Both the position numbers and the translations under genes were made by a program. 64,000 nucleotides of DNA from Kudoa neothunni (taxonomy: Eukaryota; Animalia; Cnidaria), in assembly GCA_964304625.1 (NCBI GenBank), contig OZ199838.1, positions 336,148 through 400,147 of the forward strand. Reading direction: 5' to 3'. The notes below the pieces were generated by a model, which did no database searches, had not been told where the DNA came from, and saw nothing but the letters and a program-made list of their open reading frames with translations. This document shows positions 2,795 through 58,514 of the stretch, in pieces. Position 1 is the first letter of the stretch. Each line of letters begins with the position of its first letter.

Positions 2795-5700
2795 TTATAG
2801 ATCGTAAGAAATTTCCTTAGAATTCTTTCTGTAAACAGCTACACCTATCACCCCCAAAAGTGAAGCCACGATGGGTATCATTGCATATAATCTAAGAAAG
2901 CTTATCTACAACAAATATGTATATTCTATTACATGTAACTTCCAACAGACCTATCTAATGTCAAACATGAAAATATAAATGTAAATTACGAATAACTATT
3001 CTTTGCAGCATCAAAATTGTGATTGTCTTTACTATCTACAATGTTTCTTTTTTATCAGATCATTAAATTAAAATAATTTTACTAAATAAAATCTTATAAA
3101 TATAACATGAAAATTGTTTTTACCCTTTCTCAACCTTTTCTACTACTTTTTGAACAATATCATCTATTACAATGTTTGCATACTCACTCCTAATGTTTTC
3201 TCCCCCTATAAATTTTTTATTCCACCAAGATTTTTATTTAATTTACTAGAGAAATCATTTTAATTATATATTAAATAATTGGAATTTAATTACCCTTTCA
3301 TTTGACCTATTCTTGAGTCTTCGCAAAATATATTATTAGAAAATAAGGATTATTTAATAATTTAAACAAAATATATATACACTGAATACTATATTTGTTA
3401 TAGAGTGAGTAATCTTTTGCTTTTAACTTCAAAATGTAATCTTTTTCCCTCGACAAATTATTGATGTTAACGATACACTTATTAGCAGAACATTCTTCAT
3501 CATCATTACACCATGTAACAATTTTTCCCTCCTGGTTGTCTACGATTTTTTCCTGAATCATAAACGGACATTTTGAATTGTCATCTTTTCCTGTGAAATC
3601 CACTTTAATTGTCAAGTCACTATCTCCATTCAACGAATGCTTAAGTGAAATAGTACCATTTACTAAATAATATTATTAAAACATAAGATTATTGATTATG
3701 AATACTTGTCTCAACAGAATACTCCTTATGTTTTTTGCCATCAGATGGTTCGACGGTTACGTTGTAAGTCACTCCCAATTCTAGGTTGACAATTTTGAAC
3801 ATAGCGTCACATCTATTCTCGCATGCTCCCATTCCATCACACGAAGCCATATATTTTGGATCTGAGACATCACTTTTTTTAACATAAATTCTACAGACCG
3901 GAAAATAATTATTATGTCCAAATGGTGTTATTGTAGCAGTGGAATTCTTTATGGTAGGTTCTGAATCATTCGCAGTTAAATTTTCTCCTCCAGCTAAATA
4001 TGATGTTCAAATGTAATGTTTAAGTATGCTTTTACATGTTCGGAATGTTGTTTTCCTCGTGTATCCATCAATCCCAATGTTGTTTACCGTTACAGAAACT
4101 ACATAACTTGTATCCGCAGCAAGCCCATTAATTGAATAAGTCGCTTCACAACTAGTATTACATACACGAGTGTCCTTACACTCAGCTTGTTTTTCAGTCG
4201 AATAAGTATTTGCTCTGCGTATTTTAATTGTACACTCAGAACCGGAGGTATCTGTTCTCATATGCGTATAGGCGTTAAGTCCGGTAAGGGTGACTTCCGT
4301 TTCATTAATGTCGCTTATATTTATGCCACTGTCATTTCCTATAAAACATTATTTATGAATTAAAATCCAATGTTACTTTTAAAGTATTGTTTGAATCCAT
4401 CAGTGTCAAATCTTCGTTTAACAATTATTCCGATGTTCTCAATGTCTTCTGTCAAACTGATAATATCATCTTGACAAAGTTGAAAGCACTCTTTTTTCTC
4501 TCCAATACATCCATTCAGAACAGTACTTTGTTGAGTTGGGTCACTTCCATCTACCTTAAATACCTTGATGTGACAAATCTCGCCATTATATGGACCAGGA
4601 GAGAATTTTATCTGAAGTTTTCTAGTGCTACCCTCAACGCCTGAAACAGAATAAATGATCTCAGATTTTAGTGGGGTCTCAGAATTCAAATAAGTATTAT
4701 TAATGTAATATAATATGTCAGGCCATAATAGTGTTGAACTGATATTATAATAACTTATGTATCTATCAATTGAGAGAGCAGCAGATTTATCTTGTGGAGC
4801 CTCAGAATTAGCATCGATTTTTAAGTTGTCCTTTTCTGTACTGTTGTGTTCATCATTATTTCCGTCATTTTGTATACTCCATTTAGTTATTGAGTTTGAT
4901 TTATATGAGAAGCTAACTTCGCCGTCAGTATGAGATATTTTATAAGTGTTATCTTGCTTGTAATCTATAAATATTATTTAGATTTTAAAATAAAATATTA
5001 TTTATTTTAATTACTCATTATTATTGGAAACACTTGAACTTTTTTACATCTTTTGGCTTCTTCTTTGTCTGTGCCAAAACAAACTGATATATATCGATCA
5101 ACTTTCGAATTAAAATGTCCAATATTAAGATCATTTCTATCGCAATTCACTAAACAACCAATTCCTTCTACGTCTGCACAAAGTTGTGGCTTTTTAAATT
5201 CAGTTCCTTCAAAATTAGCTATTTTTATTACACATTTATTGTTTTCAGGAAAATTAGACAGTTTAATTGAAAACTTGTCAATTCCTTTATCTGAAGTTGG
5301 TACATACTTCTGTTCAAGCTTTCCGCGTCGAATAAAAGCTATAATGTATGTCAATTGGGATTCTTTTAAAAGTTACCTGGTATAAATAACTTGAATGGCG
5401 ACGATTTTTGGTCTGCATATATCATCAACCTGTAATTGTATTTATTATCATATATCTTATTAGCAAACTGGATATTGTTGCATTTTTTTTCCTCACTATT
5501 ATCACAACCAATGCAAGACTTTATTATTCTCGTGGGTGAAGCTATTTAAGATAAAAAAAGTAATATGACATTATTACTTTCGTTGGTTTCATGTTTATAT
5601 AACTGATAGTAGCAGTCTGTAGTACTAGCTTCTTCCAAAGATTGTTTCATTTGTATTACGAGCTTGTTCTTCTCAGAATTAGTTGAAATTTTAAATTGAA

Positions 5701-8700
5701 TTATTTTACCGCCTATTTATTATTTATTCACATATTAAATCCATGAATAATGAATTTTACTTGTTTCTTTATTTTCAATAATTTGAATATTATAACTACC
5801 ACTGGGAACAATTTTGAGAGTATAAGTTGTGTGGGAGTTAAGTCCAATAATCTCGAACCGTGAGTTGCACGATTTTACACACAACTCGTTTTTTGAACAA
5901 ATTGCTGGATAATAGAATTTATTATTCTCTTTTATGTAGATTTTACAGATATTTGTTGATGTTGTAGAGTTTTCAGTGATTGTGATTCCATTCGCACTGG
6001 TATCGACTGAAGTACCCTGAATGGAAAGTTCGTTGTCTTGAGCTGAAAATATATTTAAAACCCGTTTAATTTCATAAAATACTTATTTTATGGAAAAAAT
6101 ATTTTCTTGGTGAGTAATTAGGTATATCTGTTATGGTTACCATAACATCATTATGTAAATGAGTTGGTTCAGGATTTATTTGAACCTCCCCGAAGCTACA
6201 AGCAGGCGATGAATTACTCACATCTTTCCTTCCAGTTTCAGTAACTAATGGAGCGTATGTGTTCCATATCTTTAATGAGCATAAAGCAGTTAGAGGGGTG
6301 ATTTCCTCACCATCTTCGTTTTTATTTTTTCCGCTAATGTTTATTTTAATCTTTTTTTCTTCGGTTGTGACAGAAACATCGTTTCCATGCTCCACTAAAA
6401 ACTTTTATGTAATTTAATAAATATATCTAAATCTTACATATATGTATATTATTTTGATAACCGATAGTAGGTTTCATTCCTAGTTTTAGGACCCTTATTT
6501 TAACCGCCTTTACACTTGGCTGCACATTTTCAAATCTGTATCGGTTGCATATACTGATAAAACAATTTTCTTTATTATCACATTTATTCGAAAAAAAACT
6601 GTTTGAATTTGCTGCCGTGGCGTCTATCCATTCGAATGTGCACATTTCAGATGGCTCTGAATTTACCAGTTGAACTGTGAATGCATTCTTTGTTGCATCA
6701 TGTGTGAATTCGTAATAAAATCTACTGAAAATTGGAGCTTGATTTTTAACGAATGTATTGTCGTAGAAATAATGAAAATCGAAATATTTTGGGCAGCTTA
6801 TATAATAGTCTTTTATTAACTCATCGAATTGAATCGAGTAACTTTGGAAATTGCAATCGGAGTTGACAGTTCGTGGTTCCTCCACATGACTTTTCTCTTG
6901 GGTATCCGTGAATGATTTGCATGATAATGAACATTTATTAATACCCAATTTTATATTGTCGCCTTCTAATTTAGCTATGTGAGTAAGTTCTTTGAAATGA
7001 TCTTCAAAAAAAAGGTTATATATAATGTAATTATATAATACCTATGTAATATGAATAGACCTTTCCTATTTTAATTTCGACTTCTGTCGGTGATTTTGGG
7101 GCTGGTTTTCTTGCAGGCAGAGAGGAATCAACTTCTCCCTCCCCCAGGCCACTGTTATCTTTTAAAGGTGTCTTTACTGAATCTGCTTGCGATTTTTCGG
7201 CAGTTATTAAGTTAATAATTTTTTTCTCTGGATAGGTGATGGAAATATAATTTAATTTATTCTGACTATCAGGATCAATGTAGAGTTTATTTGATAGGTT
7301 GTTGCATTTGTTTTGAGCTTCCCTGCTAATTCCAGCATTTCCATAACCCGAACGATCATTATTATATTTTCGAATTGTACATTCTTTTTCACTCTTATTA
7401 GTAAGGTCATTATTTCGGAATTTTACCCCGTATTTTAGTTTCGATTTAATGTAATATAGAATCATATCTTTATCACCTTCTTCAATATCACCTATGAAAA
7501 TAAAATTAATATTTCTACAAAACAGAAGTTACATTCTATGTTGTTTTCTGTTGGTTTAGAATGACCTATGTTTATAATAACTAGTTTATACGTATCTTCG
7601 CAATTAAGGGAAGCCCATGAGAAATCTATTGTGTTAGTTTCAGTCGCTATAGGGGGATCACATGCGCTATTCAAACAATCCATTATAATTTTGTTAGATC
7701 CGTGTTCCAGTAGGATGTATGCCCAAGACGTTCCTGAACTATTAGGTGAAGAAGTCAATGTAACTGTTGTTTTCTTTCCAACATTATTTGTTGAGGTTTT
7801 TATTATTATCTCGATTCCGGTAGCTATTTAATCTCATTATTAATAAAATTTATAAATAAATTACTCGAAGTTGCGGAGCTTTCAACGCAATTATATCCTT
7901 TCGGACAAATAGTTATTTTGTAGCTCGTTTTAGGATCAAGGTTTATTATATTAAAATTGCCATTACAAGCACCAGAACAAAATTTTTTTCCCTTCACAAG
8001 TAGCAGGGTACATGGGTGAATAATTTTCAGTAGATGAATAATAGAGATCACATTTTGCCTGATTAACTCTTTCATCTGCAAATGAACTAGATAGATTTAG
8101 AGTTAGTGCATTACGTTGACCAGAAGTAGATGTTAGCGTTAGCTCACCAGTTATTATTTCTTCTCCTATATAAATTTAGAAATATAGAGTTAATATTTAA
8201 CGTTACCTTTAGTTTTGAAATAGAAATAACGATGGTAATAATTAACTTCCGGAGAATCTAATGTTGTAAGTCCTTTTATTTTAAGTTTTAAAATATATTC
8301 TGTTAGTGGCAGAAGATGGCTCAAACTGATTGATTCAAATGCTTTACACCCTCCTTCACACGTTAGATCGTTCCAATTATCTTTAACTCCCAGATTTTTC
8401 TCTATTATTTTAACTTCTAAAATATCTGTTTCTGTTACAGCACTATCTCCGCCTTCATTTTGATTTAACTTAGTTAACATTAAGGTCGCCTCATTCTTTT
8501 TAGTTACAGTAACAGTGGGTTGATTGATACCGACTATAGAATCGATATGAAACACTAGATAAAATTATAATTTACATGTTATAGTTTGGATAAACTCTTT
8601 TGATGTTATCTTATCTAAAGATTTTACATGTACTTGAGCAAAATTGAGAGTTTGATCATGATATAAGGTAGCTTTGAAGCAAGGCTGAAGACAGGGCCCA

Positions 8701-9614
8701 GCTCTATTCATATCTGAGCAATTGGAGGAAAAATGAGAGTCATTAATATCTTTTATTCCAAAGTAACAAATTTGCGAAGGTTTTGGATTCTGGAGTGTAA
8801 CTGTATAATAATTACTATCGATTCCTTTTGACCCTGCTGCAATAAACCAATCCTCATTAAGGTTTTTTGGATTCAATAAAATTTCTGGTGACACATTGTC
8901 GGCTTCAACCACATACGTAGGTTGATATGATTTAGAAATTAGTTTAATAGATTTGGCTGAAAAAAAAGTTTGCGACGATCCTTGACTGTGCTCTGAAACA
9001 GAACCTTCGACAATCAACTCTCTGCTTTCTTTCCTTTGAACGGAAAGAGTGAATATATTATTTTCTATGGTTGCTGTCAACGAACTCTTTATGTAAAGAT
9101 CTATTTTATTGTATTAAAATATTACAAAATAAATTAATATACCATTTACAGAAAAAACCTTCTTGGTGGGACAGTTTTTCACTTCAGTATCATCCTTACC
9201 TTGGCACCATTTTATATATTTAATGGATTTAAACTCCTGACCACTGAGATTTAGTTCGACTTTTTTACACTTGAAAATACACATCTTTGAATCATCATCC
9301 ATTCGTCTACCATCTATGCCCTGAGTACACTCAGAGATTTCAATCTTCGCCCTATTTTGTCCATAATATTGGAAGGCGCAATGTTTGAAGCTATTCTCCA
9401 TATTGTACCCAGAAAGTGAAATAATATATTTCTTTTGACTGTATGAAAAATTCACTTTCATTATATTATTATCAATATTATTAGAGATCACATTTTTTGC
9501 ACATAACACTAATAACGATTAATCTATATAATCATAATGAAAATTACAAGGTAAAATGACGAGATATATCGTAGAAGCATATCGTTGTCTCAATGACAGT
9601 CTGATCATCATCAT
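2795..9614 (-). CDS. Surface protein paralog 1: multi-exon type I membrane protein with Cys-rich FN3-like repeats (~1,950 aa); one apparent +1 frameshift in an A7 run at 7983-7989
   Basis: Exon 1 plus exon 2 give signal peptide MMMIRLSLRQRYASTIYLVILPLLCA. About 22 exons are split by mostly 36-50 nt GT-AG introns, and modules carry L-x-P-x-T-x-Y-like motifs. The last exon gives LYAMIPIVASLLGVIGVAVY-RKNSKEISYDL* (stop 2795-2797). The minus ORFs from 3307 to 9509 are its exons. Confidence 0.85.
3036..3124 (-). other. Putative [D1,2] stwintron (internal intron 3082-3123 interrupts the G|T donor of a 47-nt external intron); orthologous sites 17810-17898, 38775-38863, 51855-51943
   Basis: AAAG-G-[gtaaaa...tttag]-TAAAAT...ttgtag. 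Two-step excision restores the frame into the TM-encoding exons using normal-sized introns. Confidence 0.65.
3206..3294 (-). other. Possible second [D1,2] stwintron (internal 3246-3293); orthologous sites 17980-18069, 38945-39034, 52025-52114
   Basis: Same AAAG-G-[gtaatt...ctag]-TAAATT...tatag layout. Ambiguous, because the outer segment is stop-free and in frame in copies 2-4. Confidence 0.45.
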
Positions 9615-11109
9615 TAGCTTATTAGTGGTGAATTAACAAAAAATATTTTGTTTAAATTTGTATCGATATGAATAGAGGAATTAATCTTGCCAATTATTCA
9701 TATGTCCAATTCAATTAAAAAATTACCAACCTCGATCTTACGAAAAGATAATAACTATTCAAATGTGACAACATTTTATGTGAATGGACAATTATCCTTT
9801 CGTTTATTATTGATTATTTCGAATGCCCCAACTATCTAGCTCTTCATTCAAGCGATTTTTAGATAATGTACATGAAATATTATTTTAATATTATGAAACG
9901 TATATAATTTATAAAAATTCCATGTGGCTGATTTATGATTAGTTAATAAGCATAAAAAATTAATTTTGTAAACTGCATAATTGATAAATTTTAGGCAGAA
10001 GTTATTTAAATGGTAAATTTAAAACCTTAATATCACGTAAATGTGTATTACGAGAATTTTAATTCCGCCAGCTCTTACTCGCAAGTTTTTTCTAGATTTA
10101 CTTATAGCCTAAACGACTGACATCTGAATAGTATTTTTAGGTATTCCATTGTAAGATAAATTTGTCAGTGTTAAATTAGAATTTCACTTATACTATTCAA
10201 TAATACCTAGTTTTTGAAAAATAAAAATTGTTCGTATTTATTTAAAAACTTATTTTAATGTAAAAATATTTACTTTGTTTTATAAATTTTTGTATGAAAT
10301 TTTTTGTTGAAATAAAGAAATTATGTAATCATTTTCCTAAAAAATTAGGCGACCATTAATATTTGGCGTTATTGTTAAAAATTATTGTAATAAATTCCCA
10401 TTTAAATATGTTTAATATACATTAAACAAAAATATTCGTAACTCCTGAATTTTACAACATAGCCAAATTGAATATCAAAAGTGTGACGTTCACAAACACT
10501 TGTCATCTGTTTCATTTTATAAATAAATTTTTCATAAGGAGCAAATTTACATGATTTTATAAAATTATCGTGATAATTCAAAATAAACATTATTTTATAA
10601 ACTTATTTTATATAAAATTAATAATATATTACCTGCCATGATGAAGATATTTATGAGTTATCATACCTCACAAATAAATAATAATTTACAATTTATGAAA
10701 TTTATTATAATTCAATTAAAATTTATAGTAGAAAAGACTAACTTCGAATATCGAAGTTTAGAGAACTAGATTTACTCATTTATTTCAATGAATCTAACTA
10801 TTTTACAACATTTTCATTACTCATTTACCTTTAAATATCGAAGGGAATAATAAATTCAATGCTCATATTTTTAAACTTATTCACACATATTTAGAGATGA
10901 CAATACAGAATGACAATTCATTTAATAAAAAAGAACGAGTGAGCATATAATAACACAAGATAGATAATTTAAAATAAAAATATTTATTTTTATAAAAATA
11001 CTACCCAATAACTATATTTGTGATCCCATATTCGGTCAAAAGTATTCTTCTTGAAGGTATCGAATTAAATTTATAGCTAAAACTCCTCTACTTATTCCAG
11101 GAATTTTTT

Positions 11110-12177: not shown

Positions 12178-14721
12178 CCTTCCGAGCGCTTTGGGGTCTA
12201 ATAGACCCCAAAGCATTTTGTGTTACTAATTTTATATACTTATTGGAATCAGATAAAATTTATATCTGATTTATTCTCCTACAATGAACACATGAATATT
12301 ATAATACTTTATTTTATAAAAATATTACAGTTATAAGGGAAATAAATAAACTTTATACACTTTGTGCTTTTTGGGGTCTATTAGACCCCACGTTTTTTAT
12401 TGTCTCAAACAACTGTAAAAACTATTATATGCATTATCTTAAAATTAAAACAGATTCTATCAAATCAATTAAAAGAAAATAACGAAACAAACGACGACGA
12501 TGATTCTCGAGGAGTACCGAAGCGAACGACCGTAGATATGAATGCATCTGATGATGTATATTCTGATAGTTGTGAAAGTTACTGCAGTGAATCCGTTGAT
12601 GTGGAACTGTATAGCGATAATTTGTCCGATTCTTTCGAATCTTATGATAATGATATTGAATCCCTCGATGTATACTCCGACAAAAATGGTGTAATATGGA
12701 ATACTGAAGTCCCGAAAACATCGAAAGTGTGCAAAGAAAATATTTTAAACAAAGCTCCGGGTGTTACTGCTTATGCAACACATAGAATAAAAGGATTTGT
12801 TGATTGCTTAGATATATTTTTTGATGACGGCATTTATGATACCATTTTACGAAATACAAATAAATTTGGCTCATATCACTACAGTCGATCTTGGAAACAG
12901 TTATCAAATGTGGAATTATGCGCCTACATAGGTGTGCTGATATATCTGGCGATATTTAAATCAAAATTAGAGTCTTTAAAAACACTTTGGAGTAAGGATA
13001 AAGGTAGGGAAATATTTAGAAGTATCATGCCTTTGAGAAGATTTATCGAAATTAAAAGAGCACTACATTTCGACGATTATACAACCAGAGCCGAAAGAAA
13101 ACCAGCTGATAAGTTTTGCCAAATACGGGAAATATTTGATAAATGGAAAGAAATTCTTCCTATTTGTCTTGTTCTTAATTCCAATTTAACTGTTGATGAG
13201 AAACTGGTTGCTTTCAGGGGGGAAATGCCCTTTCAAGAAATATATGCCTTCTAAACCGGCTGTGTATGGAATCAAATTTTTCTTGCTTGTTGACCCATCA
13301 ACGAACTTTTGTCACAATATCTCAATTTATCTTGGAAAACAAAATAATCAAAGAGCAAAATGTTTAGGTGAAAATATAGTGTTAGACCTTGTGTCTTATT
13401 TAAAAGACAGTGGTAGAAATATTGTCGCTGATAATTATTTCACGTCAGTTCCCCTCGCCAATAAACTATTAAACCTCGGTGTGACTATGGTTGGAACCAT
13501 TAGGCCAAATAAAAGAGACATCCCCGAAGTATTGAAGGCAAATAAGTCAAGGGAACTTAATAGTTCACTTTTCTTTTCCATGGGAAAAAATGTTAGTGTC
13601 TTACGTCCCAAAAAGAAATAAGTCAGTTATACTTTAGGTAACCTCCTCAGTAAATAAAAATGTGACTTATGACGAATGCAAAAAAACCTGAAGTCACTAC
13701 ATATTACAACAAAAATAAAGGTGGTGTGGATACTGTCGACCGAATTCTCGCTTCGACTAGTGTTAAAAGATACTCAAAACGTTGGCCAACCGTTGTTTTT
13801 TTTAATGTTTTAGATATCAGCCTAATAAACTCATTTTATCTTTACAAAGCCGTATTTAATGACAACAAAATTAGGAGAGAACAGTTTCTGGATAAACTTG
13901 CGGACGAATTTGTCAAACCATTTGTGCTAGAAAAAAATGTGCTGGTTAAAACTCAACTATTACCAAAATATTATCCTATTCCTTTGCCAAATTGCCGAAA
14001 AGATGTGCACTGTGTTCAAGGAACAATGACCGAAAAACTAAGAATTCGTGCTTTATTTGTTTAAGATTTTGTTGTGAGAAACACTCTCAGTTTGTCTGCG
14101 TTGATTGCTCAGCAGATAATAGAAATTAATATTCTTTGATGATGGTTTTCTATCATTTCACCTCAAGTAATTTGAGATTTCTCTCAATTAAAATTTAAGT
14201 TGCATGTAGGGTCATTCGAATTCGCTGGAACCATTTATTAATTATATCGACTTCATTAATTTAGAATGACTATTTTAATTCTTATGAATAATAATAACAA
14301 GATATTTATTTAACGGAAAACTGTAAAAATCTATATGCGTATGTAACTAAGAATACTTATTAGAATATTTGATAAGTTTTCTACTAAATCATTCAGGTTT
14401 ATAATGTTAAAATATTAATTAAACGATCAAATCCCCCTGAAATCAATTTATTTTGTGAATGAGAAACGATTATTATCAGACGGGATTGGGGCGAAGTAAC
14501 CCTAAGAAGGAATTAAATCTATCGTGATGCGTTAATCCCACTCGTACATTGTCGTCATTTAATATTTTTACAATAGTGTCTAAATTCCTCGATAGAATTT
14601 TTTTCAAATTTACATACGAGATTAAAAAAAACTATCGCCTTTAATGAGCAAATAAAAACCTGGGGTCTAATAGACCCCAAAAAGCACAAAGTGTATAGTG
14701 GATTTTGAGGCGCTCAGAAGG
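12178..14721 (+). mobile_element. piggyBac transposon, near full length, transposase frameshifted (ORFs 12400-13254, 13193-13621, 13669-14064)
   Basis: TIRs CCTTCCGAGCGC / GCGCTCAGAAGG with TTAA-type flanks and repeated GGGGTCTAATAGACCCC palindromes. Motifs TVDE, YMPSKPAVYGIK, ADNYFTS, YNKNKGGVDTVD, RWP. Confidence 0.95.
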
Positions 14722-14725
14722 TTAA

Positions 14726-15076
14726 AGAGACAACCAAATAAAGACGCCAACCTTATATATAAAGATAGATAGAAGCAGTTAATGAATATATGATGGAGCA
14801 TATAAGGGAGATAGTTAACTTCGGCGGACTATAACCATGAAATAACTAAGTGCCAATCCTATAGTTGAACTTATTTAATCCAAAAAACAAACTTTAAATC
14901 GACAAAATCACTATTTCATAAATACTTTTTGGAAACTTTAGTCGTCCGAAAACAATTGAACGATTTTTTTAAATATCACAAATTTATAAAAATTTTATAT
15001 ATGGCTCTCTATAAGGAAAAAATTATCCGCACATGCGTACTTAGGGGCATACACACAAACAAACATACCGACAGTC

Positions 15077-15112
<36 letters not shown>
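14726..15112 (-). mobile_element. Non-autonomous Helitron-like repeat, 5' part, ending in (CT)n(AT)n
   Basis: Reverse-complement match to 36446-36830 and a weaker match to 28040-28180. Confidence 0.65.
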
Positions 15113-15113
<1 letters not shown>

Positions 15114-17116: not shown

Positions 17117-17568
17117 TTAATGGAATTAATAACGATAATGTATGGAAATAAATTACACTTTTTAAAACGGCGCCATGTTTTTTTGAATACATATTCTAAT
17201 GGTTAATTCATTAAAATTATCGTTAAATTGTATTTAAATAGATAATAATTACCATAACGTTTTAAATATATTTCAGAGAAAATATTGAAAATAAAGAACC
17301 GTGTAAATGCAATTTTTTCTCATGTTCATTTAAATTTTAAATGAACATTAGGCACGAGAGGTTTAATAAATAGGAATTAAGAAGTGATGCGAAAAATAAA
17401 TGTTGTTAAGAGTTTATATTTTTAGAAAAAAATAAATCTAAGTTCAATATGAAAAGATATTAATAGTTATCTATTACAATTATTATAATTAAAATAATGA
17501 AAAATTTATTAACTAAATTTTATAATAATATTGGTAACTAATGTAATGGATGATGAATATATCAGTTT

Positions 17569-45427: not shown

Positions 45428-47104
45428 TATTAGCTTACTAGTTGTGAATTAACAAAAAATGTTTTGTTTAAATTTGTATCGATATGAATAGAGGAATTCA
45501 TTTTTGCTAATTATTCATACTTCCAATTCAATTAAAAAAATTACCAACCTCGATCTTACGAAAAGATAATAACTATTCAAATTGACAAAATTTTATGTGA
45601 ATAGACAATCATATTTTAGAGTGTTATTGATTATTTTTGATGCCCCAATTATCACGTATTCCATTCATTCGAACGATTTTAAGATAATATACATGAAATA
45701 TTATTTTAATATTAGACAACGTATATAATTTATAAAAATTCCTTGTGGCTGATTTACGATCAGTCAATAAGAATAAAAAAATAATTTTGTAAACTGCATA
45801 ATTGATAAATTTTAGGCCGAAATTATTTACATGGTAAATTTAAAACCCAAATATAATATAAATGTGCACTACGAAAATTTTAATTCCGCCAACTCTTACA
45901 CGCAAGCTATATACAGATTTAATTAAATATAATCTAAACTAGTGACATCCGAATAGTATTTACCATGCCAATAGCAACTTCCTTTATTTTAGGATAATCG
46001 CTAATAGTATTTTTAGGTATCACTATAAGATAAATTTGTCATTGTTAAATTAGAATTTCACTTATACTATTCAATAATACCTAGTTTTTAAAAAATAAAA
46101 TATTTAATTTGTTTTATAAATTTGTATGTGAAATTTTTGGTTGAAATAAAGAAATTATGTAATCATTTTCCAAAAAAATTAGATGACGTTTAATATTTGG
46201 CGTTATTGTTAAAAATTATTAATTTATATTAAATAATTATTATAAAAAAGTTTCACAATTAAATATGTTTTATATACATTAAACAAAAATATGTGTAACT
46301 CCCGAATTTTACAGCATAACAAACTTGAATACCAAAAGTTTAACATTTAAGAACATTTATCATCTATTTCATTTTAAAAATATATTTTTCATAAGGAACG
46401 AGTTTACATAATTTTATTAAATTATTGTGATAATTCAAAATAAATTTTATTTTATACACTTATTTTAAGTAAAATTAATAATATATTACTTGCCATGATG
46501 ACGATATTTATGAATTTTTATATCTCACAAATCAATCATAATTTACCATATATTTAATTTATTCTAATTCAATTAAAATTTATAAACGACTAACTTCAAA
46601 TAAAGAGGTTTAGAGAACTAGATTTTACTCGTTTAATTCAATGAATCTAATTATTTTACAACATTTTTATTCCTCAATTTGGCATTTAATATTGAAGAAA
46701 ATAATAAATTCAATGTTTATAATTTTGCACTTATTCACACTTATTTAGGGATGACAATAGAGAATGGAAATTCATTCAATAAAAAAGCACAAGTGATCTT
46801 ATATAATAACATAAGATGAACATTTTTAAATAAAAATGTTTATTTTTATAAAAATATTATTCAATAATTATATTTGTGACCCCATAGTCGGTCAAAAACA
46901 TTCTTCTTGAAGGTATTGAATTAAATTTTTAGCGAACACTCCGCTACTTATTCCAAGAATTTATTTTGTTTGGAAATGAAAGTTTACCGTATCTATTTAA
47001 ATTAACGGTCACGTGTGAATAATTAATTCCGTACTAGAAATAAACATTATTTAATTAAGTTCGTATCATATTTCTAAATTTATATGTGACTAAAATGAAT
47101 AATA

Positions 47105-49001
47105 CAGTAAGAAAACAATTTCACGTAATCCCCTTGGGACAAAGGAAAAAGTTAGTCAAATAGGTCACATTAAGGGCATCCAAACCTTGGGTTTTCCCAA
47201 GATCTTAGGATTTTTCTACTAAATTTGAGTTCTGGGGGTTTTTGTTTATTTACGAAACTTATAGCTTATTGTATTCTTTGAGATCAATTATAAATAATAC
47301 GTTTTAGAATTAGTTAGAATAATTATATTAATTATTTTAGTAATTGAGAGAAGAATTAAAATTATTTGAAATTTTAAAAAGACGTCGCGATCGTCGGCAA
47401 CGCGCTGTTTTCCGGTCCTTGGATTATTGTTATTTAATCAATTGTTCTTATTATTCTGTGATTGTATTTGGATATTTCAATGTTGTTTTAAAATTTTATA
47501 ATTTTTTTAATAACATATTTTTAAATTATTGGCGTATATTATTTTAAAGTATGCGTGAAATTTCAAACGGAGCTCAAAAAAGAATGGGGGATAATATGTG
47601 CTTTGACTAAGATTGGTTAAAAATAGATTTTAAAGATTGGCTTGATCATGATGCTAAGGACAGAAATTCCAGCTACTGCAAATGTTGAACAATTTTTTTC
47701 ATTAATGAACACAGTAAAAACTAAATGAACCAACTCATTAAAGGTTGAAACTGTAAAATGTAAATTTCTCGCAAACCAATTGATCAGAAGAAATAATAAT
47801 ACGTGTTTGACGTCGCATCCAACAAGTAAACTAATACATGATGTACACAGCGGTGTTGTGAGACAACGATAACTTGAGCGCTTGAAAAATAGATCAAACT
47901 TCTTAACTGAGGATTGTGAAGATGATAAAGACGATTCGATTGTCGACAATAATTAGAAAAAATATATAAAATAAAAATTTGTGTTATTTTAATAATAATA
48001 ATAATATTGTTTTCTTTGCGATCTTGGGGTTTCCCGATGGTCTCATTGGACGTCCTAGTCACATCCAATTTCAATTGCGTGCTCAATTATTCTAGAAAAA
48101 AATTAACATTTAATCAAGATTATATTTTGTTTAAACGGGTCAGCTAATTATAAATTAATTTTTATAAAATAACTAAAACTCAAGAAACGTATTAACAGCA
48201 AAAAACTATTTTTCAAAGATCTATGAAATATTCCCCTTGCTGATATCGATAGAATTAGGCATTTTTGTCTACATTGTAAATAAAATTTTCAGAGTATCTT
48301 TTAAACAATGTTCTGAATTGATTGATCCACTCTGAAGTAATTTCAGACGTAGCATCAGCTGATGGATTAATAAAATTTGATGTTTAAATGTTGAACCGTT
48401 TTTAAAACAACGAAACCCTCCACGAGTTTCACATGAAGGTAAATCTTTTTCTTTGACTAATTAATTTGTCGTGATGATTATCGATAGGACGTTTACTACA
48501 ATCTTTTCGCTTCGTGTCTACTCAATCCAATCATGTACATCTTCGTCGACAGAATGAAATTGCCCTGCATGCAAATAATTTCTTTTTATAGATTCTAAAA
48601 ACATTTCTAGGTTTTGCTTATTTTATTTTTCATTTATAGGATGCCAGTAGGAGTCAAGATAATGAATATTTTAAAACATGATATAATGACAGTTTTTGGG
48701 TAATTAGATTGGAGACTTTCATAATAATAAGTAATATTGTACTGTCTGGCAATAGGTATAGTTATTGGAGTTTTTTGACATTAAATATTGACTTAATGAA
48801 ATAAAAAACAAGAAGTACCCGAAAAAGTGCGTGAAATTGATAAATCACGGATGTTTGGTTCCACTATTTGGCAACTTTTTAAAATAATTTTTATAAAAAT
48901 TTGGATTGAAATATAATAAAAAATATATTATATAAACAATAACTAATCAATATTCTAAATAAATAGATTTTTAAAAAGTGCGTGAAATTGGCTACCTACT
49001 G
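47105..49001 (-). mobile_element. Heavily decayed Tigger/pogo element
   Basis: Imperfect TIRs TA-CAGTA......CAATTTCACG at both ends. Minus-strand remnants GQFHSVDEDVHDWI and RYSENFIYNVDKNA*FYR. Confidence 0.65.
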
Positions 49002-50452
49002 TATTTGTGTAGTTACATTTTGATTTATTTTTAAAGCATGTTGACCAAAAAACGTCGTGGGGCTCAAAAGTCCCCAAAATTCTTTAGAGGATAATTTTTT
49101 TCATACATTTAATTTTTATTCGCTCGGCTTAAGATTTTCAAAGAATGATCCTTATTGAAAGTTAGGAGATTAGATAGAATTTTGCGAATTTTTGATTATT
49201 ACATACATAATACTGGGGAAATTAATTTTAATTTGGGATCCAAAAGATCTCAAAATCACTAGAGGGTTAATAAAATTTAGCCCAATAAATATTTAATTTG
49301 TTAATTTGATGAATATATAAAATTGAACATCTGAAAACAGTATATTCAAAAGTAAAATTAGTAGTTCATAATCATGGCGTCGGGTCGAGTACTGTTCATT
49401 TTACTACCAAAAAAGATAAAAAATTTCCCGGAAAAATATTTTGCAGTAATATCTAATATTATAGTTAAAAATTTAATTAAAAAATTAAAGTAAAATGTAT
49501 TATCTTAATTCTAAATATAATTCCACGAAACATGTAATAAAAATGGATGAAAACCATGGAAACAATCTTTTCATCAATAATCGTTTGCATTACAAAAAAT
49601 AAGACATTGAATAGAATTAATCATATTCTCTCAAACTTTCGTCTTTTCCCTTAGTTTAGCATAAATCCATAAATTATTGCTTTTATCGATGAATGAATCA
49701 TCAGAATTAATTATCTCTTTATCATTTAAATAGCATAATAGCTCATTTATTTCAATAATATATAATCTGAGACATATTTTTCGTTAATATCAGGGCTTTT
49801 GTCTCTTTATTGCATAAAAACCCCTTATCGCTTTGACAATTAAAAATTATGGCGCGCGCACGTGCCACCCAAAAATTTCGAACTTTGGCACATAATAATT
49901 AACCGTTTGATTTTAAATTGGAAAAATATTTTATCAATTTTTTTAAAATATTAAAAAAACTGTGGTCCAAACCAAACCCAGGATAACGTTGAAGGTGTTT
50001 TTGTTATAAAAATTATTACGATAATCACGAAATAATTTTATTTTCTCGTAGATAAACATATTTTACATAAATGTAAATAATTTGGATCCTGTAAATTATT
50101 ATGCGCTTAGGAAAATTATTGAAGAATTTAATTAATCTGATCAATTTCCTTAAAACATTTTTATAAGTTTTTTATTGTCCAAATTAATTTAATTCCCTAT
50201 CATATGAAAATTAAACATTTCACGATTATCACTAACGAAACAAAAGAGTTAAATTTTAATTGTTAATTAGTTTTTGTGTCTGAAATTTTTGTATATTTCT
50301 TTTGTGCAATATATTCCTTAGTTGTTAATTAATACCGCGTGATCTGGTTAAAAAATTTGACTAATTTAGCTAGTAATTTTTTTTTCCATAACAAACTGAA
50401 AAATTCTCTATATATTCGAACTAAAATTTTATCCGTTGAAGATCTTAAAAAC

Positions 50453-50977
50453 AAGGGGTCGGCAATCTAAACCCACCATACATTGAATGACAGAAATTTT
50501 TCTTAATATCGAAAATAAACAAATTATTTTTAGGTTTTTTCTAGATCGTTATTCTAAATGTTAATATGTTGTCGATATAAACATTTTAACCAACTAATAT
50601 TTATTTTCATTAAATAGGAAAACCAGAATAAATATAATTGTTAAAATAACGTTATAATTATTTCCATATAAGTACAAAATATTTTTAAAAGACATTTAGA
50701 TACATCTCATGTTATTCGACATAGTTCAATAAATCGTTCATTCACAAGTTTAGCACGAGTTGATTACATTGGAAGTGAAAATTATCAGAATATAATACTA
50801 TTAATTTGACTTATTTTTCTACTTTAAAAGACATTTATAAATTATTATTTATATATTTAAACCTGAAATAAGAACTACGAATAATTTAAAATTTTTATGG
50901 ATTAATTTTAATAATGCCCGCATTAGAGTTAAGGTATGTCTGTTCGGCCCGTCACCAAAAAAGGTTTCCGACCCCTG
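50453..50977. mobile_element. hAT MITE (duplicated copy of 1633-2160)
   Basis: Same TIRs and same insertion site as 1633-2160, so it predates the duplication. Confidence 0.85.
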
Positions 50978-51613
50978 TTATAAACGATAAAAAAATCTAA
51001 AAATTGACAAACACATTTTAATTTTCTGAAATTTAATATCAATTAATCCCATTTGGTTGTGTGTGAAATCTACAATGGATGCCGAAATCGGTACTTTGAT
51101 TCTTGAGGCTTATATGCCTCGCATATGCCAGCATCGCATTTCTTTTGGAAATATAAAATAAATTAAGATTTAAATTATAATTTACAGCGGAATTTATTTA
51201 TTAATTTAATAATTTCTGAGAAAATAAGCTAACTTTTGTCGCTACAATTACTTACTAAAAGATAGTCTCATTGTGTGGACAATAGAAAACTACTTGTGTA
51301 TATATTTAATGGATAAATGCGCTGCAAGATAAAAATTAATGGATTTAGTATCTTTACTATTTTAACTTAGATATATTAATTTGGATTATTTCCCATTATA
51401 CATAATACATTTTTAAGATGATTAATATATCAAATTTATTTCAATGAATAAAAATTAAGAAGTGATACGCATAATAAATGTTGTTAAGATTTTATATATT
51501 TTTAGAAAAAAATAAATCTAAGTTCAATATGAAAAGATACTAAAAGTTATCTATTATAATAATTTTATAATAATATTGGTAACTGATGTAATGGATGATG
51601 AATATATCAGTTT

Positions 51614-54600
51614 TTATAGATCGTAAGAAATTTCCTTAGAATTCTTTCTGTAAACAGCTACACCTATCACAACCAAAAGTGAAGCCACGATGGGTATCAT
51701 TGCATATAATCTAAGAAAGCTTATCTACAACAAATATGTATATTCTATTACATGTAACTTCCAACAGACCTATCTAATGTCAAACATGAAAATATAAATG
51801 TAAATTACGAATAACTATTCTTTGCAGCATCAAAATTGTGATTTTCTTTACCATCTACAATGTTTCTTTTTTATCAGATCATTAAATTAAAATAATTTTA
51901 CTAAATATAACCTTATAAATATAACATGAAAATTGTTTTTACCCTTTCTCAACCTTTTCTACTACTTTTTGAACAATATCATCTACTACAATGTTTGCAT
52001 ACTCACTCCTAATGTTTTCTCCCCCTATAAATTTTTTATTCCACAAGGATTTTTTATTTAATTTACTAGAGAAATCATTTTAATTATATATTAAATAATT
52101 GGAATTTAATTACCCTTTCATTTGACCTATTCTTGAGTCTTCGCAAAATATATTATTAGAAAATAAGGATTATTTAATAATTTAAACAAAATATATATAC
52201 ACTGAATACTATATTTGTTATAGAGTGAGTAATCCTTTGCTTTTAACTTCAAAATGTAATCTTTTTCCCTCGACAAATTATTGATGCTAACTGTACATTT
52301 ATTGGCAGAGCATTCTTCGTCATCATTACACCATGTAACAATTTTTCCCTCCTGATTGTCTCCGATTTTTTCCTGAATCATAAACGGACATTTTGAATTG
52401 TCATCTTTTCCTTTGAAATCCACTTTAATTGTCAAGTCACTATCTCCATTCAACGAATGCTTAAGTGAAATAGTACCATTTACTAAAAAAAATAATTAAA
52501 CATAAGCTTATTGATTTTGAGTACTTGTTTCAATGGAATACTCCTTTTGTTGTTTTCCATCAGATGGTTCTACGGTTATGTTGTAAGTCACTCCTAATTC
52601 GAGGTTAACAATTTTGAACCTAGCATCACATCTATTCTGGCATGCTCCCATTGCATCACACGTAGCCATATATTTTGAATCTGAGGCTCCACTTTTTTTA
52701 ACATAAATTCTACAGACCGGCAAATAAGTTTCGGTTCCAAATGGTGTTATTGTAACCGTAGAACCCTTTTTGATTGGATCAGAATTATTCGCGGTTAAAG
52801 TTACTCCCTCAGCTAAATGCGCTATTAATATATGGCCGTTTAATTTTCCGTTACCTGTTCGGAATGTTGTTTTCTTTGTATACCCGTTGATCCCGATGTT
52901 GGTTACCGTTACAGAGATTACATAAGTTGTGCCGGCGAGAAGCCTCTTAATAGGGTATGACTCTTTACAGCTAGTGTCGCATTGATTATTATTACTACAA
53001 ATAGCCCTTGCTTCAGTCGAAAAAGTATTTGCAAGACGTATTGTAATCGTACACACTGAAGCAGGGATCCCTGTTTTCATAACTTTATAAACGTTAAGTC
53101 CGGTAAGGTTGACCTCCGTATCCTTAATGTCTGTTAAAATTATGCCCTTGTCATTTCCTATAACACATTATTTTCAAAGTTGAGTCTAAAATTACTTTTA
53201 AAGTATTGTTTGAATCCAACGGTATCAAACCTTCGTTTTACAATTATTCCAACTTTATCACCTTCTTCCGTCAACTTGATGATACCATCTTGACAAAGCT
53301 GAAAGCACTCTTTGTTCTCCCCAGTACAACCATTCAAAACAGTACTCTGTTGATTTTGATTATGTTCATCTACCTTAAATACTTTGATATGACAAATCTC
53401 GCCATTGTATGGACCAGGAGAGAATTTTATCTGAAGTTTTCTAGTGCTACCCTCAACGCCTGAAACAGAGTAAATGATCTCAGATTTTAGAGGGGACTCA
53501 GAATTCAAATAAGTATTATCAATGTAATATAATATGTCAGGCCATAACAGTGTTGAACTGATATTATAATAACTTATGTGTCTATCAATTGAGAGAGCAA
53601 CAGATTTATCTTGTGGAGCCTCAGAATTGGCTTCGATTTTTAAGTTGGCCTTTTGTGTGCTGCTGTGTTTATCATCGTTTCCATCATATTGTATATTCCA
53701 ATCAGTCATTGAGTTTGATTTGTAAGTGAAGTTAACTTTGCCGTCAGCATACGATATTGCATAAGTGTTATTTTGTATGTTGTCTATAAAAAATATCGTT
53801 GAAAATTATATTATATAAATATTAGTATTTTTAATTACTCGTTATTATTGGGAACACTTGCATTTTTTTACATCTTTTGGCTTCTGCGTTATCTATGCCA
53901 TAACAAACGGATATATATCGATCAACTTTGGAATTAATATATCCGACATTAAGATCACTTTTGGTGCATTCCACCAAACAATTACCTTCATCTTCTTCTG
54001 TACAGAGTTGTGGCTTTATAAATTCAGTTCCTGCTAAATTAGCAATTTTTATCACACACTTCTTTGCGGAGAAATCTTTCAATGTAACTAAAAATTTCTC
54101 AGTTTCTGTACCCAAAGATTTCATTAACTTTTGTTCAAGTTTTCCACTTCGAGTAAAAGCTATAAATGTATGTAAATTTAAACTTCTTTGTAAATTTTAC
54201 CAGGTATCGATAACTTGAATGGAGATGATTTTTTGTCCGCATAAACCATTAGCCTGTAGTTGTATTTATTATCGTATATATCATCAAATTCAATGTTATC
54301 ACATTTTTTAACATCATCAATATTACAACCAATGCAAGACTTTATTATTGTCGTGGGTGAAGCTATTTGAAGATAATGAAAATAATATGATACGATTACC
54401 TGTGTCTGTATCATGTTTATATAACTGGTAGTAACAATTTGTATCGCTTGCGTTTTCCCAAGACTTTTTCGTTTGTATTACGAGCTTATTCTTCTTGGAA
54501 TTATTTGAAATTACAAATTCAATTGTCTCGCCACCTGTTTATTATTATTTGACTCATTAAATATATAAATAATGAATGTTACTTGTTTCTTTATTTGCAA

Positions 54601-57600
54601 TAATTTGAATATTATAACTACCACTGGGAACAACTTTGAGAGTATAAGTTGTGTGGGAGTTGAGTCCAATGATGTCGAACGGTGCTTTGCACGATTTTAC
54701 ACACAACTCGTTTTTTGAACAAATTGCTGGATAATAGAATTTATCATTCTCTTTTATGTAGATTTTACAAATATTTGTTGATGTTGTAGAGTTTTCAGTG
54801 ATTGTGATTCCATTCGCACTGGTATCGACTGAAGTATCCTGAATGGAAAGTTTGTTGTCTTGAGCTGAAAATATATTTAAAACCCGTTTAATTTCATAAA
54901 ATACTTATTTTATGGAAAAAATATTTTCTTAGTATGTAATTATGTATTCCCGTTATGGTTACCATAATATCATTATGTAAATGAGTTGGATCGGGAGTAA
55001 TTTTAACTTCCCCAAAGCTACAATCGGGTGATGAACTACTCACATCTTCCCTCCCAACTTCAGTAACTAATGGAGCGTATGTGTTCCAAAATTTTAATGA
55101 GCATGAAGCAGCTAAATTGATAACTTCTACGTCATCTTCATTTTTATTTTTTCCAGAAAGGTTAATTTGAATTTTTTTATCTACTGTTTTCACAGAAACA
55201 TCATTTCCATGTTTCACTAAAAAATTTTATCTTATATATTAAATATACCTAAATCATACATATATATATATTATTTTGATAACCGATAGTAGGTTTCATT
55301 CCTAGTTTTAGGACCCTTATTTTAACGGCCTTTACATTCGTGTGCACATTTCCAAATGTATAGCTGTTGCACAAACTGAAGAAACAATTTTCTTTATTAT
55401 CACATTGACTCGAAAAAAAGCTGTTTGGATTTGCTGCCGTGGCGTCTAGCCATTCGAATGTGCACATTTCAGATGGCTCTGGGTTAACCAATTGAACTGT
55501 GAATGCATTGTTTTTTTCATCAATTTTTAGTTCATAATAAAATCTACTAAAAACAGGAGCTTGTGTTTTAACGAATGTATTGTCGTAGAAATAGTGAAAG
55601 TCAAAATATTCCGGACAGCTTATGTAATAGTCGTTGACTAACTCATCGAATCGAATCGAATAACTTCCAAAATCACATGCGGGGGTTCCAGATGATGTTT
55701 CCTTTACAAATCCTTGCTCATCTGCATCCTTATATGATTTGCATGATAATGAACATTTGTTTAAACCCAATTTTATATTGTCATCTTCTAATTCAACTTT
55801 GTGAGTAAGTTCTTTGAAATGATCTTGAAAAAATGATTAAAGTTATAATGAAATTGTATATTACCTATGTAATATGAATAGACCTTCCCTACATTAAAAG
55901 TGACAGTTTTTTTCACTTGTTCCGGCGTCTTTTTTGATTCAGATTTTTGAGATAGTGGAGTTGACGGTGAGGGACCTTTACTTATTTCCCCTGCGTCACC
56001 TTTTTCTCCTGCAAGTAACTCTCTCCCATTTGTTTGCGATTTTGCAATAATTTCTTTATTAATACCCGATTTTCCCGGATTATTTCTGGGGGTATTTTCA
56101 GTGTGTGAATAAGTGACCGAAATATAATTTAATCCATCCTGACTAATGGGATCAATTTCGAATTCTGTTGAAAGGTCGGCGCATTGTTTTGGCGTTTCCC
56201 CACTGATTATATCATCGGAATAACCCAAAAGGTCATTCTTAGATTTTTTGATTGTACATTGCTTGCTGCTCTTACTAATTAGCTCATTATCTATGAATTT
56301 TACCTTGTGCTTTCGTGTAGATTTATCGTAATAAAGCACCATTTTCTGATCACCTTCATCGATACCACCTATAAATAAAAAGTTAATATTTCTACAAACG
56401 AACAATTACATTCTAGGCTGTCTTCTTTTGGTTTAGAGTAATCTACATTTATAGCTACTAGTGTATATGTAACTTCACAGTTGAGAGAATTCCATGAGAA
56501 ATCTATGGCATTAGATCCACTCGTTACGACAGGTTTGCAACCGCCATTCAAACAATCCCGAATAATTTTGTTAGATCCTTGTTCCAGTAGAACGTATTCC
56601 CAAGATGCTCCTGAACTTTCGGCTGAAGTAACTCCCAATGTCATTTTTGTTTTCTTATCCTGATCCTCTTTTGACATGTTCATTGTTATATCGGTTCCAG
56701 AAGCTGTTTAAATTCATTATTATTGGAATAATAAAAATAAATTACTCAACATCGCAGTGCTTTTAACGCAGTTATATCCAATCGGACAAACAATTATTTT
56801 ATAGCTTGTTTTAGGATCAAGATTTATTACAGTGAACTCGCCAATACAAGGACCGGAACAAAATTTTTTAGTTCTATCTTTCTCACATGTAGCAGGATAT
56901 ATCGGTGTATCGTTTTCAGAAAATGCATAATAGAGATCACATTTTGCGTCATCACCTCTTTCATCGGAAAATAAATTAGATAAACTTAAAGTTAGTTTAT
57001 TATGTTGACTCGAAGTAGTGCCTGGCGTAATATTTCCACTATTTGCTAAGTTATCCCCTATTTGAAGTTATAAGTATAGAATTAATATTTATCGCTACCT
57101 TTAGTTTTGAAATAAAAATACCGATGATAACAATTTACTTCAGGAGAATCTAATGTTTTAAGTCCTTTTATTTTAACTTTTAAAATGTATTCTGTTTGTG
57201 GTACAAGCGAACTCAAAGTTATTTGTTGAAACCTGCTACATTCTCCGTTACAATGAAGATTTTCCCAATTATCTTTAATTCCCAGATTTTTCTTTATTAT
57301 TTTAATTTCTGCAATAGATGTTCCAACTTCAGTTTGATCTACGCCTTCATTTTTATTTAGATTACTTAAATCTACAGATGGCCCATTCTCTCCAGTTACA
57401 GTAATAATGGGTTGATCGTCACCGACTATAAAATCGATGAGATACATTGTATAAATTACAATTTACATGTTATAGTTTGAATAAACTCTTTTGATGTTAT
57501 CTTGTCAATTGGTTTTACAAGTACTTGGGCGAACTTGAAATCTGTCTCATGATATAAGGTTGCCTTGTAGCAAGGCTGAAGACAGGGCCCAGCTCTATTC

Positions 57601-58514
57601 ATATCTGAGCAATTAGATGAAAAATGAGAGTCATTAATATCTTTAATTCCAAAATAGCAAATTTGCGAAGGTTTTGGATTTTGTAGAGTAATCGTATAAT
57701 ATTTATTAACGCTGTTATCTTTTGACCCTGATGCAATAAACCAATCCTCATTAAGGTTTTTTGGGCTCAATAAAATTTCTGGCGTCTTTTGACCGACTTC
57801 AATCACATACGTAGGTTGATATGATTTAGAAGGTAGTGTAATAGATTTGGCTGTATAAAATTCAGACAACGATTCTTGTTTTTGTTCTGGAGCAGAACCT
57901 TTGATTGTTAATTCACTGTTTTGTTTACTTTGAACTGAAACACTGAATATATTATTTTCTTTAGTTGCTGCCAACGAACTTTTTATGTAAAGATCTATTT
58001 TATGATAATAAAGTATTAGAATATACGTTATTATACTTTTTATAGGAAAAACTCTCTTGATAAGGCATTTTTTTACATCATCATCATCATCATCATCCTT
58101 ACCTTGACACCATTTTATAAATTTAATGGTTTTAAACTCTGCATCTTTGAACTTTAATTCGACTTTTTGACATTTATAAATACACATCTTTGAAGGTTGA
58201 TCTATTTGGGAACAGTTTACGCTATTAGATCCTGTGGAGACGATGTTTATTGCTTCCCTAGTATATCCATAGTATTGGAGGGCACAGTGTCTGATGCTAT
58301 TTTCAATATTGTATCCAGAAAGTGAAATAAGATATTCATTTTTTCCGTGTGGAAAATTCACTTTCATTATATTATTATCAATGTTATCAGAGATCACATT
58401 TTTCGCACATAACACTAATAACGATTAATCTATATAATCTCAATGAAAATTACAAGTTATAATGACGAGATAGATTGTATAATCATATCGCCCCAAGGAC
58501 AATATCGTCATCAT
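51614..58514 (-). CDS. Surface protein paralog 4; no lesion found in the exons checked
   Basis: Signal peptide MMTILSLGRYDYTIYLVIITLLCA (exon 1 58454-58514, intron 58415-58453). Full exon series, poly-Asp from a (GAT)n repeat near 58076-58097, TM plus RKNSKEISYDL*. Confidence 0.9.

Follow-up and report, generated by a model that had tools for sequence, protein, structure and literature searches.

A 64,000-nucleotide (nt) stretch of the Kudoa neothunni genome (assembly GCA_964304625.1, contig OZ199838.1, positions 336,148 to 400,147), which we refer to as the window, carries four paralogous genes in tandem that encode giant, predicted single-pass membrane proteins. Comparison of the window with itself revealed four colinear copies, at ~2600 to 9900, 17360 to 24750, 38300 to 45720, and 51420 to 58800, that share 75 to 88% DNA identity. 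We number these copies 1 to 4 (g1 to g4) in the order of their positions. All four paralogs are co-oriented, with their coding sequences on the minus strand, and the open reading frames (ORFs) in the four regions are also on this strand. The array is bounded by the stop codon of copy 1 at 2795 and the ATG of copy 4 at 58514; the window has 24 to 33% G+C and contains no N. A first-pass annotation of this DNA had described four co-oriented genes encoding a signal peptide, a long ectodomain, one transmembrane (TM) helix, and a short tail, and had proposed that they form a recombining repertoire of surface molecules, as a candidate locus for antigenic variation or host recognition. The described gene layout can be seen directly in the sequence, and we examined here how the four genes are built, how they have evolved, and how far the proposed role is supported.

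To model the genes, the four loci were aligned on the minus strand, and exon boundaries were projected from copy to copy and then fitted to splice sites common to all copies. This procedure gave 19 exons per gene, encoding a protein of ~1,940 amino acids (aa). Exons 2 to 17 each have a length divisible by 3 and begin in phase 1, and the internal exons are nearly all of the phase 1-1 type. The introns are canonical GT-AG introns; introns 1 to 16 are 32 to 50 nt long, and introns 17 and 18 measure 175 and 232 nt. Copy 4 (51614 to 58514) has the sole uninterrupted 19-exon model, with an ATG at 58514, a TAA at 51614 to 51616, and 5820 coding nt specifying 1939 aa plus the stop. All of its splice sites are GT-AG, phase 1-1 applies to every internal exon through exon 17, and no in-frame stop codon interrupts it.

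The other three copies have the same 19-exon layout. Copy 1 (2795 to 9614) loses its frame once, in exon 5 (8165 to 7865, 301 nt) at an A7 run (7983 to 7989), and each of its other exons is open in the homologous frame. In copy 2 (17569 to 24460), exon 2 is 367 nt long, one base in excess at an A7 run (24017 to 24023), and its frame is kept only if the upstream GT at 24000 serves as the donor; in addition, the donor of exon 10 is displaced by 6 nt. Copy 3 (38534 to 45427) has the A7 run in common with copy 2 (44993 to 44999) and carries an extra T in a T6 run of exon 3 (44777 to 44782), within a tract that is otherwise identical to copy 2. The three frame breaks are all +1 changes in homopolymer runs (A7, T6, and A7). 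Because they involve single bases in homopolymers of exons that are otherwise fully open in the homologous frame, we infer that they are assembly errors or very recent slips and that each of the four genes is functional or was so until recently; the pattern is as suggestive of sequencing error as it is of mutation. A tblastn search of the window found no further family fragments, truncated donors, or silent cassettes besides the four complete genes. Each gene has a homologous upstream flank; the homology is clear for three of them and least evident for copy 2, which has a pogo-type element ~270 nt upstream.

The ends of the predicted proteins are those of membrane-anchored molecules. In copy 4, exon 1 (58454 to 58514) encodes the putative signal peptide, MMTILSLGRYDYTIYLVIIT, continuing as LLCA/KN in exon 2; the equivalent exons lie at 9548 to 9614, 24403 to 24460, and 45367 to 45427 in copies 1, 2, and 3, respectively. 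Exon 19 of copy 4 (51614 to 51710) encodes the predicted TM helix and tail, LYAMIPIVASLLVVIGVAVY followed by RKNSKEISYDL and the stop codon, with equivalents at 2795 to 2891, 17569 to 17665, and 38534 to 38630. This last exon contains the sole strongly hydrophobic window of the protein (Kyte-Doolittle score over 19 residues, 2.58), and the tail is 11 residues long in all four copies. The leader, TM helix, and tail, as read from the sequence, indicate that the products would be type I single-pass surface molecules. Their ectodomain contains 18 N-glycosylation sequons (NxS/T) and ~65 Cys residues.

Alignment of the exon peptides revealed that the ectodomain consists of ~18 cysteine-bearing copies of a repeated module of ~95 to 100 aa, with four conserved Cys residues and a C-terminal "L..T.Y.L.V" motif. 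Exon 16 (52525 to 52812 in copy 4; 95 aa, 4 Cys) encodes a typical single module, and exons 11 and 12 jointly encode one. The long exon 8 (55260 to 55823 in copy 4; 187 aa) probably encodes two beta-sandwich modules and is paralogous to exons 3 and 14, each of which probably also holds two. The kinship among exons 3, 8, and 14, together with that among exons 5, 10, and 15, suggests an internal triplication. The modules are interrupted by a low-complexity, hypervariable linker encoded by exon 7 (55865 to 56368 in copy 4; 7042 to 7491, 21819 to 22310, and 42788 to 43297 in copies 1, 2, and 3). This linker is the most divergent part of the protein, with 64 to 68% identity between copies, a nonsynonymous substitution rate (Ka) of 0.45, and a ratio of nonsynonymous to synonymous substitution rates (Ka/Ks) of 0.75.

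Structure prediction assigned the modules to the fibronectin type III (FN3) fold. An AlphaFold model of the exon 16 module, built from an alignment of 31 modules, had seven strands, a predicted local distance difference test (pLDDT) score of 82, and a predicted template modeling (pTM) score of 0.70. When this model was compared with the PDB by Foldseek, nearly all of the top matches were FN3 domains (from CD148, fibronectin, and titin) or monobodies, with TM-scores (template modeling scores) of 0.55 to 0.74, and the best match was FN3 domain 2 of CD148. At the level of the modeled fold, the modules thus appear to be seven-strand beta sandwiches that can be superposed on solved FN3 domains. The model of exon 8 was of low confidence (pLDDT, 62) and resembled tandem FN3 pairs, with fold-match TM-scores of just 0.23 to 0.34.

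Sequence searches gave a fainter signal. The tabulated score against Pfam PF00041, 19.4 bits, did not reach the gathering cutoff of 25; a second Pfam scan found weak fn3 matches in 5 of the 31 modules (best E value, 3.6e-5), and a profile search of the PDB weakly matched the E-F strand region in fibronectin, Dscam, and tenascin (best E value, 1e-3). No family besides these weak fn3 matches was found in the Pfam and PDB sequence searches. Specifically, Pfam scans of the exons and modules returned neither an immunoglobulin (Ig), V-set, or TIG match nor any domain homologous to those of VSG, PfEMP1, MSG, Alr, or Tgr. The stop codon 11 residues past the TM helix in all four copies, together with the lack of any ORF of at least 70 aa in a conserved 2.5-kb downstream flank, indicates that the genes do not encode a protein tyrosine phosphatase (PTP) catalytic domain. 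The first-pass annotation had stated that it did not recognize the family, and this was fair: the family appears to be an orphan at the sequence level, with modules that are predicted to have the FN3 fold.

We next consider the relationships among the four copies, which were reported in the first-pass annotation to change along the gene. Sliding-window identity confirmed that the nearest paralog switches from segment to segment. Among 460 parsimony-informative sites, 257 support the pairing of copies 1 with 4 and 2 with 3 (14/23), 109 support 12/34, and 94 support 13/24. This support varies sharply from one part of the gene to another (chi-square, 286; df, 42; p = 4e-38), and adjacent informative sites agree in topology 324 times, compared with 188 ± 9 in 5000 shuffles. 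Each of the three topologies reaches at least 91% bootstrap support in some segment: 14/23 in exons 2, 3, 10, and 16 and in segments 8b and 14b of exons 8 and 14; 13/24 in the upstream flank and exons 4, 5, and 13; and 12/34 in introns 13 and 14. A single tree topology for all exons, one of the observations that the first-pass annotation had named as refuting its reading, was looked for and not found. The flanks are mosaic as well, with the upstream flank pairing copy 1 with copy 3 and the 2.5-kb downstream flank being common to copies 1 and 4 at 85 to 100% identity.

The switches correspond to discrete tracts of high identity, and the tracts listed in the first-pass annotation were recovered here. 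The longest, between copies 2 and 3 (23553 to 24140 and 44528 to 45116), extends from within exon 2 across intron 2 into exon 3 and comprises 588 nt that are identical but for the one extra T in copy 3. An exact tract of 335 nt lies in exon 14 (19196 to 19530 and 40161 to 40495), and further exact blocks between these copies are found at 21281 to 21619 and 42250 to 42588, at 18640 to 18799 and 39605 to 39764, and at 18249 to 18523 and 39214 to 39488. Exact identity between copies 2 and 3 totals 2.3 kb in 10 blocks. Copies 1 and 4 share two tracts with 94 to 96% identity. The first (5759 to 6105 and 54581 to 54927) covers exon 10, with 95% identity versus 73 to 76% for the other pairs, and intron 9, with 100%; the second lies at 4612 to 4828 and 53431 to 53647. 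A GENECONV-style runs test supported both the 2-3 and the 1-4 tracts (p < 0.001).

The remaining pairings appear in other segments. In exon 4, copy 1 (8207 to 8533) is nearest to copy 3 (44022 to 44348), with 88% identity versus 73 to 79%, and the 13/24 topology is supported at 20 of 29 informative sites with 99% bootstrap. In exon 13, copy 2 (19790 to 20113) is nearest to copy 4 (53839 to 54159), with 85% identity versus 76 to 80% and 93% bootstrap for 13/24. Introns 13 (4965 to 5014 in copy 1) and 14 (4339 to 4376) group copies 1 and 2 at 98 to 100% identity and copies 3 and 4 at 81 to 84%, as the first-pass annotation had found, with 10 and 6 informative sites, respectively, and none contrary. 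Between these two introns, exon 14 pairs copy 1 with copy 4 and copy 2 with copy 3 at 53 sites, 48 of which are in its 3' three-quarters (4829 to 4377). With the introns on either side of this 3' part pairing copy 1 with copy 2, no single tree can hold for all exons. The clustering of incongruent sites, together with tracts of identity that include introns, is what is expected of interlocus gene conversion, or concerted evolution, in a tandem array. Site clustering, the runs test, the segment identities, the exact blocks, and the bootstraps all show a genuine patchwork, for which repeated short-tract conversion among the tandem paralogs, the mechanism proposed in the first-pass annotation, is the best explanation.

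Conversion has also kept one part of the gene uniform. A 3' block comprising exons 17 to 19 and the 175- and 232-nt introns between them (2795 to 3662 in copy 1; 17569 to 18437, 38534 to 39402, and 51614 to 52482 in copies 2, 3, and 4) is 92 to 100% identical across all four copies. Within it, introns 17 and 18 are 96 to 100% identical in all copies, and the exons upstream of the block differ by 15 to 35%. The near identity of introns next to diverged upstream exons argues for homogenization by conversion and not by selection alone. Introns 17 and 18 (2892 to 3380 in copy 1 and equivalents) are also 4 to 5 times longer than the other sixteen. They may contain alternative exons or regulatory elements; a comparison with Rfam gave no match.

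Relatives of the family are rare. Single exons served as database queries, and full-length relatives were sought only through a profile built from the four exon 8 sequences. When 1.84 billion representative proteins were searched with this profile, the matches were seven unnamed, short fragments of ENA and Logan assemblies; another search brought one further relative, and JGI metagenomes contained none. The relatives lie on short, AT-rich contigs (23 to 35% G+C) from a few recent runs and metagenomes: L002 (ENA ERZ28624939), L007 (Logan SRR33529766), L001, L003, and L004 (Logan SRR31175926 and SRR33849685), L005, and L006. Two of these, L002 and L007, have ~70% DNA identity to the array and retain the layout of exons 7, 8, and 9, including a 45-nt intron. 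The others are colinear with exons 12 to 16 at 20 to 35% protein identity, and 2 samples hold two diverged paralogs each. These results demonstrate that the family is real, is multicopy in relatives, and is limited to poorly sampled organisms. No description of an equivalent family turned up in a search of the literature.

The DNA between and around the genes is rich in mobile element remnants. Two broken piggyBac-type transposase genes (DDE_Tnp_1_7) lie in opposite orientations between copies 1 and 2 (12400 to 14064, plus strand; 15337 to 16443, minus strand); a search with a piggyBac fragment returned nothing at E ≤ 1e-10. Two broken pogo/Tc5-type elements (HTH_Tnp_Tc5, DDE_1) are inverted relative to each other (25544 to 27157, minus strand; 34602 to 36239, plus strand). 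An inverted repeat with 78% identity (24734 to 25447 and 36926 to 37606) starts ~270 nt upstream of the start of copy 2, and its partner is ~900 nt downstream of copy 3. Further remnants on the plus strand are a fragment of a Helitron-type PIF1 helicase (31602 to 33378), whose best relatives, with 35 to 47% identity, are scattered among nematodes, insects, spiders, rotifers, molluscs, and bryozoans, which indicates that the databases contain no close genome, and a long terminal repeat (LTR) retroelement remnant (60963 to 62700) with a zinc knuckle followed by integrase H2C2 and core domains, broken into several frames. A short interspersed repeat of ~270 to 370 nt, which may be a nonautonomous element, occurs three times in intergenic DNA (14722 to 15080, 27908 to 28180, and 36458 to 36830; 72 to 90% identity). 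The region from 46000 to 51400 has 24 to 27% G+C and almost no frame of at least 70 aa (one, in the 46- to 48-kb bin); within it, 49084 to 51420 is the conserved downstream flank in common with copy 1 (266 to 2600). No Rfam families and no tRNAs were found in the window. By its composition and short introns, the DNA looks like that of an AT-rich, intron-rich, and probably invertebrate eukaryote, not like human DNA. The published G+C content of the acanthocephalan P. laevis, 32.9%, is compatible with the window, but P. laevis genes are the least compact in their group (PMC8351084), unlike the genes here with their 40-nt introns, and an acanthocephalan origin was judged unlikely.

Taken as a whole, the array is in our judgment probably a set of four tandem paralogs encoding an orphan family of giant type I FN3-array membrane proteins that evolve by short-tract interlocus conversion. 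Under this explanation, each protein would consist of a signal peptide, ~18 divergent, disulfide-bearing FN3-fold modules (one per phase-1 exon), a linker in the middle, a TM helix, and an 11-residue tail that would carry no signaling domain. Repeated conversion in tracts of ~30 to 600 nt would occur among the copies, and the nearest paralog would consequently differ segment by segment. The membrane-proximal module, stalk, TM helix, and tail, with their introns, would be kept almost the same across the four copies, and divergence, under relaxed to moderate purifying selection, would take place in the distal ectodomain. From this architecture, we infer a role as cell-surface adhesion, recognition, or coat molecules, in which the conserved anchor may engage a common partner. 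Three points weigh against this explanation. The model with conserved splice sites leaves only one of the four copies intact, and true pseudogenes may be among the others. The gene structures come from computation, and the junctions of exons 17, 18, and 19 rest on phase logic and conserved sites. Polishing errors in a repeat-rich assembly could in principle inflate the tracts of exact identity. As for the mosaic itself, the first-pass annotation had counted all six pairings among the copies; the switching is strong, but the pairing of copies 3 and 4 is the weakest, being limited to intron 13, intron 8, and the 3' end of exon 8, all of them short stretches.

The array might instead be a locus that generates diversity for recognition, that is, a variant antigen repertoire or an allorecognition or host-recognition system in which conversion is selected for the new ectodomain combinations it creates. 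The dense mosaic, with events as recent as the exact blocks between copies 2 and 3, the constant anchor joined to a variable ectodomain, and the lineage-restricted, fast-evolving character of the family are all in keeping with such a locus. Selection was assessed from Ka/Ks calculated by the Nei-Gojobori method (NG86). By exon, the ratio was 0.06 to 0.75 and never above 1, with the lowest values, 0.06 to 0.13, in exons 17 and 18 and values of 0.15 to 0.75 elsewhere. In 25-codon windows, the median was 0.45, and 17 of 155 windows exceeded 1, chiefly within the linker and the N-terminal half of exons 4 and 6. Ratios of ~1 to 1.7 in the linker and the N-terminal half of certain modules, together with greater variation at non-strand than at strand positions within modules (0.32 versus 0.24; p = 0.014), would be in line with diversification. 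Such local excesses were not significant: one-sided Fisher tests on windows near or above 1 gave p values of at least 0.15 in 11 of 12 cases and an uncorrected 0.039 in the other, four sequences affording little power. The selection data fit relaxed constraint on parts of the ectodomain and do not demonstrate diversifying selection.

Other observations also argue against a recognition locus. There are just four copies in 64 kb, all of them full genes, three with clearly homologous upstream flanks, and none accompanied by truncated donor cassettes. Conversion homogenizes as well as shuffles, as the 3' block illustrates; the modules have no similarity to known variant-antigen or allorecognition domains; and ordinary tandem receptor paralogs have mosaics of the same type. 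The recombining repertoire proposed in the first-pass annotation is thus not sustained by the complete genes, the lack of donors in the window, the exon Ka/Ks values below 1, or the domain searches, and we regard a diversity-generating recognition locus as unlikely, even though it survives best among the alternatives.

A second alternative is that the array is decaying, with three of the four copies being pseudogenes that tandem duplication left behind in a transposon-rich region and conversion a neutral by-product irrelevant to function. Copies 1, 2, and 3 do each lose frame under the conserved splice sites, broken transposons fill their surroundings, and a median window Ka/Ks of 0.45 is rather high. 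However, all exons are open over ~5.8 kb in the homologous frame, apart from single-base homopolymer changes; splice sites are kept at nearly all junctions, and where aligned donors have been lost, a GT lies within 6 to 16 nt. Moreover, most exons have Ka/Ks ratios well below 1, also when the "broken" copies are compared with one another, which indicates that selection acted on them until very recently. We therefore consider decay improbable. More doubtful still is an assembly artifact, in which reads misassigned or mispolished among paralogs with 80 to 88% identity would have created the tracts, switches, and frameshifts: the frame breaks do resemble the homopolymer length errors typical of long-read assemblies, one of them lies in the longest "identical" tract, and the region is repeat rich, but older tracts with 85 to 96% identity also support all three topologies and would not result from polishing, switches of 40 to 600 nt between copies 14 to 49 kb apart are easily resolved at 12 to 25% divergence by reads of several kilobases, and haplotype switching exchanges alleles at one locus, not paralogs.

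The orphan FN3-array proteins can be compared with several known systems. R3 receptor tyrosine phosphatases (PTPRB, PTPRJ/CD148, and PTPRQ and the Drosophila Ptp10D type) similarly have an FN3-only ectodomain, a single TM helix, and one module per phase-1 exon, and one of them, CD148, provided the best structural match. In contrast, the array proteins end in 11 residues without a phosphatase or other cytoplasmic domain, show no detectable sequence homology to these phosphatases, and add a four-Cys pattern to the modules. Variant antigens (trypanosome VSG, Plasmodium var, and Pneumocystis MSG) are likewise patchworks of paralogs with a conserved anchor end and a variable exposed part. The array differs in having four complete genes in the window instead of a large archive with silent donors, in being intron rich, and in having a different fold, no domain homology, and no demonstrable positive selection.

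Allorecognition clusters (Hydractinia Alr1/Alr2, Botryllus fuhc, and Dictyostelium tgrB1/tgrC1) resemble the array in their clustered type I proteins with tandem beta-sandwich modules and short tails and in the recombination among their paralogs. The array modules are FN3-like, however, not Ig V-set-like or IPT/TIG, and the array proteins are ~2 to 3 times longer. Allelic hyperpolymorphism is the defining property of allorecognition loci, and the array is known here from a single haplotype. In the variable exons of clustered protocadherins, conversion also homogenizes the membrane-proximal, TM, and cytoplasmic parts while the distal ectodomain is diverse; unlike these exons, the array consists of separate complete genes, not alternative first exons joined to shared constant exons, and its modules are FN3-like, not cadherin domains.

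The locus offers a clean, well-resolved example of fine-scale conversion, in which all three quartet topologies occur and switches take place at the scale of exons and introns, acting on a family of giant FN3-array surface proteins that had not been annotated before. At present, it is best described as an orphan family shaped by an ordinary evolutionary mechanism. A constant anchor combined with a shuffled ectodomain is nonetheless the layout used by recognition systems, and such a role would be well worth considering for this locus if its source organism is parasitic or a colonial animal. It is conceivable, at rather long odds, that the array is an undescribed recognition system, possibly of a gut-dwelling or parasitic invertebrate, in which conversion among FN3 arrays produces new ectodomains on a constant anchor. 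If so, the new combinations would serve host-parasite interaction or the distinction of self from non-self, and the system would parallel var/VSG or Alr in function while using a different fold.

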